Origin: Rebecca billardiae RCC1528
Taxonomy: Eukaryota > Protista > Haptophyta
Direction of reading: 5' to 3'
NCBI GenBank assembly: GCA_965240325.2
Contig: OZ251229.1
Span: 2,418,001 to 2,482,000, forward strand
Length of the DNA: 64,000 nt
Positions 3,190-61,771 of this stretch are shown here, one piece after another. The notes beneath the pieces are model-generated. The model was not told the DNA's origin, made no database searches, and was given only the letters and a program-made list of their open reading frames with translations. The position numbers and the translations under genes are program-made. The number at the start of each line of letters is the position of its first letter. Position 1 is the first letter of the stretch.

Positions 3190-5263
3190 GTCTAGCCACT
3201 CCGCCATGCCCGGCTCGTACAAGGCGTCGGGTACGAATGGACTCTGGAGCTGGATGGTCGCGGCGCGCGGCGTCGTGGAACTTCGCTCTCGGGGGCGCCA
3301 TGGGGCTGCTCACGACGAAGGCGCCGAGCTGGGCAAGGGAATCGCCTGCATCGAGCACTGCCGGGTGCACTCTCCGCTGCAGGAGGTGCACCGCAGTCGC
3401 GCAGCCCCTCTGCTCGGTAAGGTCGCTGGCTGTCTGTGTGGCCCGGCTCCCCGCCTGATCGTTCGGCGGCGCGACGACATCATCTACTGTCTTCGCCGCG
3501 TCGCCCCTCATGCAATATGGTCTCCTGCTCTCGCCGCTGTCGCGTCAACCCGCACGCTTCATCGTTTGAGATACGCGCTCGCCTCGCGCCCGTGCGTCGC
3601 GCGGGTGCGGCGCACTCTGACGCGTGTCTGCTCGCCGCGCGTCGCGATCGATCGTGCGCGCGCGGCCGCGCAGTCCTCGTCTCTTCTATTTCTAAACGGG
3701 ATTCATCAACGACTACTTGGACGCCCGCTCCAACTTATAAACGGGACTCGCGGGCGCCCTCTCGACCTCGGGCAGCAGCTCAACCGCCACGCCGCTGCCA
3801 GCGCCCGCTGTCGTTCGTTGCTCAAATCCCAACATAGCTAACCTGATCGTTCCATGATTGATCATTGTGGTCTGTCTATCTACTCCACGACGCCGCGCGC
3901 CGCGACCATCCAGCTCCAGAGTCCATTCGTACCCGACGCCTTGTACGAGCCGGGCATGGCGGAGTGGCTAGACGTGGCGTTATAGGGAACCTATAACTGA
4001 GTGTCTATGAGCGACGCCAAGAATCCGGCTCGCACGGCATTCCTGCGTTGTCCTGTGCGCACCGCCGCGCGCAGGAGTCCTGGTGCGCTGCCAATCTGGC
4101 CCACAGCGGCGCACCCGCAGGACTCGGTTGGTTACCGCTCACATCGGATCGATCAGGCTTCGCTCTCGGGGGCGCCATGGGGCTGCTCACGACGAAGGCG
4201 CCGAGCTGGGCAAGGGAATCGCCTGCATCGAGCACTGCCGGGTGCACTCTCCGCTGCAGGAGGTGCACCGCAGTCGCGCAGCCCCTCTGCTCGGTAAGGT
4301 CGCTGGCTGTCTGTGTGGCCCGGCTCCCCGCCTGATCGTTCGGCGGCGCGACGACATCATCTACTGTCTTCGCCGCGTCGCCCCTCATGCAATATGGTCT
4401 CCTGCTCTCGCCGCTGTCGCGTCAACCCGCACGCTTCATCGTTTGCCCGCCCGCCCACCCTCGGCCTCTGGCGGATATGGAAGCGCACTGCAGTGTCAGC
4501 GAGCCATCAGCCTTAATCGACCTTGCTCAGTGACTGACGACTCGCGGGCGCCCTCTCGACCTCGGGCAGCAGCTCAACCGCCACGCCGCTGCCAGCGCCC
4601 GCTGTCGTTCGTTGCTCAAATCCCACGAACGACAGCGGGCGCTGGCAGCGGCGTGGCGGTTGAGCTGCTGCCCGAGGTCGAGAGGGCGCCCGCGAGTCGT
4701 CAGTCACTGAGCAAGGTCGATTAAGGCTGATGGCTCGCTGACACTGCAGTGCGCTTCCATATCCGCCAGAGGCCGAGGGTGGGCGGGCGGGCAAACGATG
4801 AAGCGTGCGGGTTGACGCGACAGCGGCGAGAGCAGGAGACCATATTGCATGAGGGGCGACGCGGCGAAGACAGTAGATGATGTCGTCGCGCCGCCGAACG
4901 ATCAGGCGGGGAGCCGGGCCACACAGACAGCCAGCGACCTTACCGAGCAGAGGGGCTGCGCGACTGCGGTGCACCTCCTGCAGCGGAGAGTGCACCCGGC
5001 AGTGCTCGATGCAGGCGATTCCCTTGCCCAGCTCGGCGCCTTCGTCGTGAGCAGCCCCATGGCGCCCCCGAGAGCGAAGCCTGATCGATCCGATGTGAGC
5101 GGTAACCAACCGAGTCCTGCGGGTGCGCCGCTGTGGGCCAGATTGGCAGCGCACCAGGACTCCTGCGCGCGGCGGTGCGCACAGGACAACGCAGGAATGC
5201 CGTGCGAGCCGGATTCTTGGCGTCGCTCATAGACACTCAGTTATAGGTTCCCTATAACGCCAC
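3190..5263. mobile_element. Rearranged copy of the (TA)n-targeting split-direct-repeat element (family A), with an internal inversion and fold-back
   Basis: Flanked by (TA)n at 3176-3189 and 5264-5272. Starts GTCTAGCCAC and ends CCTATAACGCCAC, like 59767-61425. 3190-3279 is the inverted repeat of 3884-3973, and 3974-4612 is the reverse complement of 4625-5263. Confidence 0.85.
3974..5263. repeat. Long palindrome: 639-bp arms with a 12-nt spacer (4613-4624)
   Basis: Mirror ORFs have identical translations (4001..4297+ and 4940..5236-; 4005..4388- and 4849..5232+). Mirror coordinates sum to 9237. Confidence 0.95.
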
Positions 5264-58340: not shown

Positions 58341-59766
58341 GACGAGTACCTTAGCAATATAGCAGGTCGGCGGTCGAGTCATAGCACGCGCAGTCTCAGC
58401 ATCGTCACGCAGATCATCGATGATATATCGGACGATACTACTACGTACGAATATTACACTCGGCTGAGACCTGACAGCTCATACCGGGCGCGCGGAGTAC
58501 GTCTCGGGCTACTACGCCTACTCTCGGCCCGGCGCGCGGCGGGGCCCGGAGTCTGACACCGGGGCCACGCCAGTCCGAGGGCACCCACATACTCGTATGG
58601 CGCCCATATAGTCATTGGCCATCATCACTTATTGTCATATCGATCGCCGCGAGTAGCATAACATATTTATTCACTTCATCAGCAGTCCGCAGTAGCTAGT
58701 GAGCCATCACGCTGACTGATGACACGCAGGTCCGACTAATCAGGCTCCGGATCGACTCACGAGACACACGACTCTGTCTGTCTGGCGGCCACGGTGGGCT
58801 GGCGCCGCCGTGGCGGGCCTGCGCGCAGCGGCCGCTCTGCTCTGCGGTCACCGCTCGTCAGTGTCGTCGATCTGATGATGATGTGTCGTACGACGTCAGA
58901 TCGCGATATATATGACTGTGACGAGCGTGCCAGTAGACTACGACCGACGACGAATGTCGTAGTCCGCGCCGGTCATCAAATAACATCATCAGTCAGCGCA
59001 CGTGGCCGCCGCCGGTCATCAGTCAGCTAGATGTCACGGATGCGGTGCCGGACTCTATCTGCGTCAGACGATCGATAGGACTTGCGCTGACGATACAGGC
59101 AATCGCGGGCAATAAGGAGCTGTCACGTTAAGAAACTGGGGCTTGCTATCTGCGGATCTGGCCTAGAAACTGAGACTAGCGATTGGCTGGTTCGCTATAC
59201 GCATAGTCACACTGAGAAACCGGGACCCGGACTACGTCGCCCGCGGCCGATGAGTGGTCCGCCGAGGGCCCGAGGCGCAGTGCCCGTGGGACGCGGCGCG
59301 CGGCCCGACTACGACGGTACGCCAAGTCCCGACTGAGTCTCCTGATGACTGACTCCTGGCCAGTGCACCGCAGCATCCATACAACATACATTATGCCAGA
59401 TTTGCTCCAAAATGGCCCAAAATTTTCTTCGGTCTCGCCGGCCGGGCCCGTAAAGACTCTGCGGGGGGCTGTGCCCCCCTGCGTCCCCCGCGGCCGCGCC
59501 TCAGCCTGCGCGGCGGGCGGACCCAGCTAAGAAACTGAGACTCCGTAGGCGTTCGGGCTACCGAACGGCTAAGAAACCGAGACTAGCCGTGAGATCTCTG
59601 ACTTCTTATTGCGTCGGCCCGCAATTGCCTGCATATCCGTCGTCGTCGCATCCGTCGTAGCAGTAGCATCAGCCATCACTCATCATCAGTACGCATCATC
59701 GATCATCATCAGCATCATCGATCACTGCGCTGTAATAACTGACTGCGCTAGCAGCTATATATATAT

Positions 59767-61425
59767 GTCTAGCCACTCCGCCATGCCCGGCTCGTACAAG
59801 GCGTCGGGTACGAATGGACTCTGGAGCTGGATGGTCGCGGCGCGCGGCGTCGTGGAGTAGACAGACCACAATGATCAATCATGGAACGATCAGGTTAGCT
59901 ATGTTGGGATTTGAGCAACGAACGACAGCGGGCGCTGGCAGCGGCGTGGCGGTTGAGCTGCTGCCCGAGGTCGAGAGGGCGCCCGCGAGTCGTCAGTCAC
60001 TGAGCAAGGTCGATTAAGGCTGATGGCTCGCTGACACTGCAGTGCTTCCATATCCGCCAGAGGCCGAGGGTGGGCGGGCGGGCAAACGATGAAGCGTGCG
60101 GGTTGACGCGACAGCGGCGAGAGCAAGAGACCATTGCATGAGGGGCGACGCGGCGAAGACAGATGATGACGTCGCGCCGCCGAACGATCAGGCGGGGAGC
60201 CGGGCCACACAGACAGCCAGCGACCTTACCGAGCAGAGGGGCTGCGGCGACTGCGGTGCACCTCCTGCAGCGGAGCGTGCACCCGGCAGTGCCCGATGCA
60301 GGCGATTCCCTTGCCCAGCTCGGCGCCTTCGTCGTGAGCAGCCCCATGGCGCCCCCGAGAGTGAAGCCTGATCGATCCGATGTGAGCGGTAACCAACCGA
60401 GTCCTGCAGGTGCGCCGCTGTGGGCCAGATTGGCAGCGCACCAGGACTCCGCCTGCGCGCGGCGGTGCGCACAGGACAACGCAGGAATGCCGTGCGAGCC
60501 GGATTCTTGGCGTCGCTCATAGACACTCAGTTATAGGTTCCCTATAACGCCACGTCTAGCCACTCCGCCATGCCCGGCTCGTACAAGGCGTCGGGTACGA
60601 ATGGACTCTGGAGCTGGATGGTCGCGGCGCGCGGCGTCGTGGAGTAGACAGACCACAATGATCAATCATGGAACGATCAGGTTAGCTATGTTGGGATTTG
60701 AGCAACGAACGACAGCGGGCGCTGGCAGCGGCGTGGCGGTTGAGCTGCTGCCCGAGGTCGAGAGGGCGCCCGCGAGTCCCGTTTATAAGTTGGAGCGGGC
60801 GTCCAAGTAGTCGTTGATGAATCCCGTTTAGAAATAGAAGAGACGAGGACTGCGCGGCCGCGCGCGCACGATCGATCGCGACGCGCGGCGAGCAGACACG
60901 CGTCAGAGTGCGCCGCACCCGCGCGACGCACGGGCGCGAGGCGAGCGCGTATCTCAAACGATGAAGCGTGCGGGTTGACGCGACAGCGGCGAGAGCAAGA
61001 GACCATTGCATGAGGGGCGACGCGGCGAAGACAGATGATGACGTCGCGCCGCCGAACGATCAGGCGGGGAGCCGGGCCACACAGACAGCCAGCGACCTTA
61101 CCGAGCAGAGGGGCTGCGGCGACTGCGGTGCACCTCCTGCAGCGGAGCGTGCACCCGGCAGTGCCCGATGCAGGCGATTCCCTTGCCCAGCTCGGCGCCT
61201 TCGTCGTGAGCAGCCCCATGGCGCCCCCGAGAGTGAAGCCTGATCGATCCGATGTGAGCGGTAACCAACCGAGTCCTGCAGGTGCGCCGCTGTGGGCCAG
61301 ATTGGCAGCGCACCAGGACTCCGCCTGCGCGCGGCGGTGCGCACAGGACAACGCAGGAATGCCGTGCGAGCCGGATTCTTGGCGTCGCTCATAGACACTC
61401 AGTTATAGGTTCCCTATAACGCCAC
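59767..61425. mobile_element. Family A non-autonomous element, 1659 bp, with A-X-B-A-Y-B split direct repeats, inserted in (TA)n
   Basis: A=59767-59991 and 60554-60778 (225 bp); X=59992-60082; B=60083-60553 and 60955-61425 (471 bp); Y=60779-60954. Flanks are TATATAT|GTCTAG and GCCAC|ATATA. Terminal hairpin GTTATAGG-TTC-CCTATAAC. Confidence 0.9.
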
Positions 61426-61771
61426 ATATACATGGCCCGCGGTGCAGGGACGGAGCGCGCAGCGTGGAGCCCGCACCAGCGGGCCCGAACCACGTTTCAA
61501 AAAGATCTTTGATCAAGAAAAAGGGACGCGGGGGCCGATTTTTAGGGCTGGCGGAGACCGAGTTTCGAATTTTGAGACCCTCTCTACAGATGCATCACGG
61601 AGAAAAAAACCGCGCCCGCGACATTCCCCTAATCAATCGTGGACGGCCGGGCGTGAGAGTTCACTTCTGTGTGAAGTAGGACGGTTACAAGTCCAATACA
61701 AGCGTCAGCTTCTTTGAGGCTATTTTTGCACGTCCTTACGGGATCAGCGAAGTAACCAACCGATATATATT

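Follow-up and report, generated by a model that had tools for sequence, protein, structure and literature searches.

A protein-less (TA)n-inserting element of Rebecca billardiae, probably a miniature of a tyrosine-recombinase retrotransposon lineage with split direct repeats

A 1.66-kb element without genes lies at 59767 to 61425 of a 64,000-nucleotide (nt) stretch of Rebecca billardiae RCC1528 contig OZ251229.1 (positions 2,418,001 to 2,482,000; the whole stretch is called the window here, and its positions are counted from its first letter). The element consists largely of two split direct repeats, and it encodes no protein. It is probably non-autonomous and a miniature version of the tyrosine-recombinase (YR) retrotransposons with split direct repeats (Ngaro/PAT-like, DIRS order) of a haptophyte lineage. 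In its targeting and its junction it is an unusual variant of a known element type, not a new class.

The 1659 bp are arranged as A(225)-X(91)-B(471)-A-Y(176)-B, with both A copies and both B copies 100% identical (Table 1). The internal junction between the first B and the second A, GCCAC^GTCTAG at 60553^60554 (carets mark junctions and insertion points), joins the 3′ terminus to the 5′ terminus with no base gained or lost, and the flanks read ...tatatatatat^ on the left and ^atatac on the right. This plan, the exact end-to-end junction, and the identity of the two B repeats had been described in an earlier note made from the letters of the window alone, and all three hold to the base. The exact A...BA...B plan and its junctions also support that note's comparison with PAT/Ngaro-type elements. 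All 35 internal junctions read in loci of the family, hereafter the AXBAYB family, were GCCAC^GTCTA. Inverted repeats were looked for between 59000 and 62500 and none were found, the repeats of the element being direct. Chance open reading frames (ORFs) of the element gave no match in Pfam, an Rfam search identified nothing inside it, and the indels that distinguish B haplotypes of the family have lengths not divisible by three.

Copies were sought in a 72-Mb, 41-contig, very GC-rich eukaryotic assembly using matches to the 24-nt termini, and the loci fetched were read individually. Each terminus was matched 140 times in the genome, compared with 0 matches for reversed control patterns, and the family is therefore far beyond chance. 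At least 19 AXBAYB dimers were identified, several of them 100% identical over 1659 bp at unrelated loci, and X stood ahead of Y in every dimer. Pieces of the element, junction included, were also present in a second public sequencing run (Logan contigs). The other forms among the loci read were AXB and AYB monomers, trimers (AXB-AYB-AYB and, at locus L007, one AXB-AXB-AYB), one longer AXB(AYB)n array on contig C11, several foldback rearrangements, and ∼14 internally deleted short forms (228 to 1089 bp) that kept both termini. The short forms were rejected as proof of monomer mobility: breakpoints were unique to each of the ∼14, and no derivative had been amplified. Within the C11 array (L030, C11:1464093-1468420) two B haplotypes alternate (07, 12, 07, 12), which points to duplication of a two-unit block. 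Foreign insertions were found inside B of two copies, one of ∼1.7 kb at B449 (L045/L031, C1:4893864-4897557) and one of 3.1 kb at B411/412 (L023/L081, C33:123107-126262).

The flanks of these copies support insertion between T and A of (TA)n without target duplication. T preceded 61/61 host-flanked 5′ ends in the loci fetched, and A followed 57/57 host-flanked 3′ ends of the AXBAYB family; a 58th match in the scan, followed by G, was a junction of the C18 family described below. ATAT flanks were seen at 54/61 left ends and 55/58 right ends (the 58 include the C18-family junction, which is not a host flank), while (TA)≥3 runs occupy 0.2% of the window. Copy L004 lies at a mixed microsatellite (gtgtgt^...^acatat), at T^A and with no bases duplicated. 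The proposal of a mobile non-coding family targeting (TA)n at T^A is supported. Another TA-associated repeat, with the terminus TTAACGACGTGGCA directly adjoining (TA)n, was found at C23:56330 and 75121 and in flanks at L007, L023, L027, and L070; recurring as it does beside several AXBAYB-family copies, it is probably a further TA-targeting element family.

Repeats were far more alike within copies than between them. Across 54 informative B sites, 21/33 within-array pairs had no discordance (mean 0.79), compared with a between-array mean of 9.9, and B units did not cluster by their X or Y neighbor (9.89 versus 9.78). More than a dozen B haplotypes were distinguished, at least 8 of which were identical in both units of an element. 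B1 and B2 shared a haplotype in most dimers, each such lineage being present at one to four loci, and dimer lineages differed from one another by ∼8 to 15 B sites. Differences inside dimers were mostly private single changes, the clear exception being L016, where B1 and B2 are discordant at 10 informative sites. The pattern is that of long terminal repeat (LTR) pairs and indicates that the repeats are made identical at the birth of a copy, in support of the suggestion that homogenization within copies is tied to copying.

A search of the genome with Pfam models for tyrosine recombinases gave five weak matches, all belonging to one family, two of them a few kilobases from AXBAYB-family fragments. 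This family, with copies on contigs C18, C23, and C33, is a likely kind of helper for the AXBAYB element. Its C23 copy (L082, C23:1219888-1225268) reads c1(452)-3.86 kb-d1(264)^c2-87 bp-d2 between the flanks ...gtgt^ and ^atatat; the C18 copy has a 92-bp spacer and differs from the C23 copy only by an added 1154-bp AXBAYB-family fragment. On the strand antisense to the ORF, the joined ends of the helper family are GACAC-ACTCG-GTTATAAC-TCC-GTTATAAC-GCCAC^GTGTC, and those of the element are TAGAC-ACTCA-GTTATAGG-TTC-CCTATAAC-GCCAC^GTCTA. Both junctions fold to the same two-storey hairpin, consisting of a lower stem, a 5+5 bubble with GCCAC on its 3′ side, and an upper 8-bp stem. The lower stem is compensatory between the families (TAGAC/GTCTA versus GACAC/GTGTC), the upper-stem variants among families and subfamilies (AGG/CCT, AAC/GTT, AGC/GCT, and TTG/CAA) are paired in all cases, and the loop is TNC throughout, which is GNA on the sense strand. 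A terminal GNA-triloop hairpin, taken in the earlier note as a feature more typical of HUH systems, is present as GTTATAGG-TTC-CCTATAAC plus GCCAC, with the GNA triloop on the minus strand; it is one half of a two-storey stem-loop over the joined ends, is shared with a recombinase-bearing family, and does not point to an HUH system. The strand on which the element was originally read is antisense to the helper ORF, the sense strand being the minus strand of the window. Read in sense, the element is A*(471)-Y′(176)-B*(225)^A*(471)-X′(91)-B*(225), the same plan as c1-internal-d1^c2-spacer-d2 of the helper family. The end of a sister family (L052, C23:75438 onward, minus orientation, 3′ end alone seen) reads ...TAGACACTCA-GTTATTG-TGC-CAATAAC-GCCAC; it has the same flanking signal, with the stem compensated differently.

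Homologues of the helper protein (1640 to 1770 amino acids) were found in marine metagenomes and in haptophytes (Prymnesium and Pavlovales sp. CCMP2436), and two of them pass the Pfam recombinase cut-off. Their alignment contains the reverse transcriptase (RT) motifs DDxADYFNQL, LGFG..SSNIAQRF, and YTDD, the ribonuclease H (RNase H, or RH) motifs SDAA..G.GGY and NPLADAxSR, and the recombinase motif HxxR. Using hhalign, the middle region of the helper matched the Pfam-positive RT-RNase H ORF of C23:93512-102487 with a probability of 92.6% (E value, 4e−7; 360 columns); its motifs there include DDxADFF, GFG..S, and F/YTDD alongside those of RNase H. The top Foldseek hits of the helper RT region were all retroviral or Ty3 RTs, which is supportive only, the AlphaFold model being poor (predicted local distance difference test [pLDDT] score, 48). 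A sequence profile of the helper ORF searched against PDB identified no RT, giving noise and a weak XerD match only. The helper family is RT-RH-YR, of the ordinary DIRS-order type, with an RT too divergent for Pfam. The autonomous partner, which had been thought to belong possibly to an undescribed class, need not do so, this family being the best candidate. The element itself is without a Pfam-matching ORF, and an RT-RH-YR family of the same genome, on which it may depend, shares its junction signal and insertion rule. The helper family also has miniatures of its own on C34, C29, and C16 (c-∼20 bp-d^c-sp-d), together with solo c-spacer-d copies, so that becoming miniature or solo is a normal event among such elements.

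Two further arrangements involve both coding sequences and AXBAYB-family pieces. The 1154-bp fragment in the C18 helper-family copy (L041+L080, C18:1301869-1303022) is B[3-471]-A-Y-B[1-287], co-oriented in sense and placed exactly where c1 meets the internal region; it begins and ends at AXBAYB-family breakpoint hot spots, and the C18 copy looks like a template-switch chimera of two elements. The second (L053, C23:93512-102487) is a 9-kb split-repeat element, a1(803)-ORFs-b1(533)^a2-172 bp-b2, inside a TA run. A Pfam-positive RT is present, along with RNase H motifs, but no recombinase was recognized, and a diverged AXB monomer of the AXBAYB family truncates the 3′ repeat.

Breakpoints in the rearranged and deleted copies formed polar clusters. 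Of 17 "starts" in A, 11 fall at A139-152; of 17 "ends" in B, 7 fall at B282-296; 12 "starts" in B fall at B2-11; and foldbacks have their axes at A∼140 (window 4625, L043). The partners vary, as in A[1-52/74/201/223]+A[140-225] and in A[216/220/223]+B[3-471], the latter with three different joints. From these positions we infer that the three clusters (A∼140, B∼3, and B∼290) may be the ends of a linear RNA or cDNA intermediate. In sense, the RNA would start ∼180 nt into the first A* and stop ∼85 nt inside the last B*, and priming or strand transfer would take place where A* meets the spacer. A shortened RNA of this kind is what the DIRS/Ngaro model requires, the internal junction being the template for the ends that the RNA lacks.

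The mechanism proposed for the element would accordingly begin with a sub-genomic RNA running from inside the first A* (∼B position 290) to inside the last B* (∼A position 140), from which cDNA would be made by enzymes supplied in trans. The internal B*^A* junction would supply the end sequences still missing, in the manner of the DIRS-1 model, and therefore both A copies and both B copies would be identical at every round. The joined ends would then fold to the two-storey hairpin, by means of which the recombinase would place the element at T^A within (TA)n without target duplication. Monomers, trimers, and arrays could arise from recombination, or from RT template switching, between the direct repeats.

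Independently inserted monomers and arrays of variable unit number, which the earlier note had listed as observations that would speak against a retroelement, both occur. They do not discriminate, as recombination or template switching between repeats accounts for both: Ngaro elements are known to leave solo AB repeats by recombination (PMC8547959), and every young AXB or AYB monomer carries the B haplotype of a dimer lineage. Such monomers fit recombination between A1 and A2, giving AYB, or between B1 and B2, giving AXB. Homologous template switching during reverse transcription would yield the same monomers and also AXB(AYB)n and AXB-AXB-AYB. In the latter form, at L007, the middle unit has a different B haplotype, which fits either switching between two RNAs or circle integration. 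Older, diverged AXB monomers (L062 and L064-L066) allow that single units might also move.

The second locus of the family in the window, at 3190 to 5263, was examined in the same way. The earlier note had placed the same junction and the same X-then-Y order here, in inverted orientation, and the family, the junction, and the order in the inverted block are as it described; the structure is more complex than it had set out, the locus being a rearranged copy (Table 1). The two full-length B copies of this locus do not differ from one another and are 96.8% identical to B of the first locus, with ∼15 differences, in line with the claim that B copies match within a locus and differ between the two.

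Table 1. Coordinates of the AXBAYB element and of the second, rearranged locus in the window
Feature	Position	Strand	Remarks
Left target flank, (TA)n run with final T	59756..59766	.	T before 61/61 host-flanked 5′ ends of the family
A1, 225 bp, 5′ split repeat	59767..59991	+	100% identical to A2; GTCTA at its start is the 3′ arm of the lower junction stem
X, 91-bp unique segment, G-rich tract at its end	59992..60082	+	In sense orientation corresponds to the 87- to 92-nt spacer of coding relatives between the second repeat pair
B1, 471 bp	60083..60553	+	Repeated rearrangement breakpoints at B∼1-11 and B∼282-296
Two-storey junction hairpin over B1^A2	60520..60558	+	Fold plus compensatory changes in the recombinase-bearing family
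A2, 225 bp	60554..60778	+	Repeated breakpoints at A∼139-152
Y, 176-bp unique segment	60779..60954	+	Sits where the internal (ORF) region lies when read in sense orientation
B2, 471 bp, 3′ split repeat	60955..61425	+	Hairpin plus GCCAC at its end (61392-61425)
Right target flank, ATATAC	61426..61431	.	A after 57/57 host-flanked 3′ ends of the family
Second locus, A[1-90], (TA)6 run before	3190..3279	+	
Second locus, inverted block A[139-225]-X-B-A-Y-B[1-284]	3281..4625	-	Both ends at family breakpoint hot spots
Second locus, A[152-225]-X-B, then (TA)n	4625..5263	+	Foldback with the inverted block, axis at A∼139-152

Several observations weigh against a miniature moved by an RT-RH-YR helper. A circle with two identical B^A junctions could open at either, in which case Y-before-X dimers are expected, and none were seen. 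A full-length coding element with the A and B of the AXBAYB family itself was not found: 12/12 unpaired perfect-match 5′ ends that were opened were short or deleted variants, and not all of the 17 unpaired 3′ ends and of the 40 unlisted mismatch matches of each end were read. RT motifs A and B are kept only in the C33 copy of the helper family (at about C33:127100-133200), the ORF and ends of which were partly read, and the C18 and C23 copies have lost both motifs. Similarity between the AXBAYB and helper families is limited to ∼45 nt at the junction and is at background level outside it; likewise, X′, the C18 spacer, and the C23 y segment share a C-rich tract only. The folding energy of the hairpin is unremarkable (−7.3 kcal/mol, z = −2.1 for the element; z = −1.4 for the helper junction), and the hot spot at B∼290 could be due simply to an 8-nt palindrome, GATCGATC, that lies at B∼292-299. 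Finally, no core is common to junction and target, unlike in the trinucleotide model of DIRS (PMC7192593). As to the long copies with ORFs in place of X or Y that the earlier note had envisaged, none with the family's own A and B were found in the loci opened. Two candidates were rejected: a pair of 3′ ends 6.2 kb apart on C23 belonged to two separate short copies, and a 2.8-kb "long" copy on C1 was an AXB with a foreign insertion at B449.

The alternative that fares best, and that we nevertheless regard as unlikely, is a Crypton-like DNA-only element, in which double-stranded circles would be cut out and integrated by a tyrosine recombinase with no reverse transcription, arrays would form by circle integration, and gene conversion would homogenize the repeats. 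Exact head-to-tail junctions, the existence of both monomer kinds, and a recombinase family sharing the junction signal would all suit such an element, as would the middle unit of L007, since a foreign B haplotype is what a monomer circle entering a resident junction is expected to bring. Unlike a Crypton recombinase, however, that of the related family lies in one ORF with RT and RNase H motifs. Homogenization, moreover, follows lineages spread over several loci and is near-complete in young copies, like that of LTR pairs; the X-before-Y order is invariant, and circle integration would not be expected to leave polar clusters of breakpoints within A and B.

Rolling-circle transposition of the Helitron or Helitron2 type is considerably less probable still. 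Here the 3′ hairpin would be a termination signal, the short 5′/subterminal inverted repeat an asymmetric terminal inverted repeat, and the tandem units products of read-through. Helitron inserts between A and T and Helitron2 between T and T, with ends of the form 5′-TC...CTRR-3′, whereas the AXBAYB ends are GTCTAG...GCCAC and the insertion is at T^A. The element resembles Helitron2/Helentron in the absence of target duplication, in the subterminal 3′ hairpin, in a short inverted repeat that is asymmetric (5 nt at the 5′ end match, in inverted orientation, sequence upstream of the hairpin), and in head-to-tail tandem arrays, and the genome holds intact Rep/helicase ORFs of 2600 to 3640 amino acids. 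Rep/helicase proteins move those elements, however, whereas the terminal signal here belongs also to an RT-RH-YR family, and no GT...hairpin-GCCAC ends were seen near the ORF of the one Helitron copy that was read (C23:56-75 kb; Helitron boundaries unmapped). Read-through would give identical units and not an X unit followed by a Y unit, and it offers no mechanism for homogenization of B1 and B2 across lineages. A Helitron was rejected as the mover: five Rep matches lie in long open frames, and the region of the C23 copy is without matching termini. The Helitron-like Rep/helicase on C23 occupies a 3519-amino-acid frame (L051+L049+L052, C23:58551-69107), with an array of ∼100-nt tandem repeats just upstream on the other strand; the four other Rep/helicase matches, on C7, C13, C33, and C39, lie in open frames of 2600 to 3640 amino acids. 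Least probable of all is satellite-like growth, in which a monomer transposon inserting beside itself in TA tracts would be turned into dimers and arrays by unequal crossing-over, the dimer not being mobile: a unit number of 1 to more than 5 and the alternating B haplotypes of the C11 array, typical of unequal exchange, would agree with it, but at least 19 dimers stand at unrelated loci with the same X-Y order and exact junction, several 100% identical over 1659 bp, and for a further copy to insert precisely at the end of a resident one, the target would have to be C^A instead of T^A.

Recombinase retroelements with split repeats have been described before, as have DIRS elements that are non-autonomous. 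Ngaro elements have the plan A1-[ORFs]-B1A2B2 and leave solo AB repeats as products of recombination (PMC8547959). With the Ngaro of Cafeteria burkhardae (PMC8547959), the family described here has in common split direct repeats that are identical within a copy, solo AB derivatives, and coding relatives with RT-RNase H-YR. It differs from Ngaro in that the AXBAYB element has no ORF, is 1.66 kb long, and has a 91-nt spacer between the second A/B pair; it also inserts strictly at T^A in (TA)n, with a conserved two-storey hairpin over the joined ends and no short core shared by junction and target. TOC1 of Chlamydomonas is several kilobases in length. It is one of the known non-autonomous DIRS elements (PMC9940879) and, like the AXBAYB element, a retroelement with an unusual split repeat arrangement that is presumably moved in trans. 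In the text consulted, no (TA)n targeting or junction hairpin is reported for TOC1 (PMC9940879). TOC1 has no sequence relationship to the AXBAYB element. DIRS-1 of Dictyostelium cannot do without its internal complementary region, makes single-stranded cDNA, and has an RT that acts in trans; a trinucleotide shared with the target has been proposed for DIRS, and the authors call their own assay the first experimental evidence for a general mechanism (PMC7192593). The cycle proposed for the AXBAYB element would resemble the DIRS-1 model in that a sub-genomic transcript is completed from joined ends present internally, with single-stranded cDNA intermediates and RT acting in trans. DIRS-1 has inverted terminal repeats and an internal complementary region (PMC7192593), whereas the repeats of the AXBAYB element are direct and no shared core is seen. 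A limited literature search identified no paper linking split-repeat YR retroelements to TA microsatellites or to a junction hairpin. To what was known, the present analysis adds a family of RT-RH-YR type that carries this covarying signal, a correction of the strand, figures for the homogenization, and a breakpoint map.

Beyond the two loci, sub-threshold Rfam matches of C/D-box small nucleolar RNA type at window 59667-59713 (minus strand; 21 to 23 bits compared with gathering scores of 40 to 54) lie in a GAT-rich simple stretch and are most likely due to chance. The host sequence to the right of the element, at window 61433-61510 (ggcccgcggtgcaggg...gtttcaaaaag), recurs beside another rearranged copy on C3 (L068) and is therefore itself part of a repeat.

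The integration of tyrosine-recombinase retrotransposons is unsettled, and the AXBAYB family offers a compact, gene-less natural substrate of 1.66 kb, with dozens of young copies, a predictable T^A target, a covarying junction signal of ∼45 nt, and a candidate helper in the same genome. Very tentatively, and by analogy with integron attC and CTX phage, the hairpin of folded single-stranded cDNA might be the recombination site, inserted by the recombinase into T^A without a shared core. The attC and attP sites likewise have a hairpin with an unpaired central bubble near the exchange point, are handled by tyrosine recombinases, and need little or no target homology; they belong to bacterial systems, and the likeness is an analogy only. 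The lack of a core shared by junction and target keeps such a reading open. If true, it would amount to eukaryotic site-specific integration of folded single-stranded DNA, and it would explain the absence of target duplication and of core homology together with the single-stranded cDNA of DIRS type. If the breakpoint clusters are RNA or cDNA ends, they provide testable coordinates for the transcript and the strand transfers of a split-repeat element. Pfam misses the RT of this haptophyte lineage, and such elements could therefore be mistaken for "recombinase-only" or "enzyme-less" ones.

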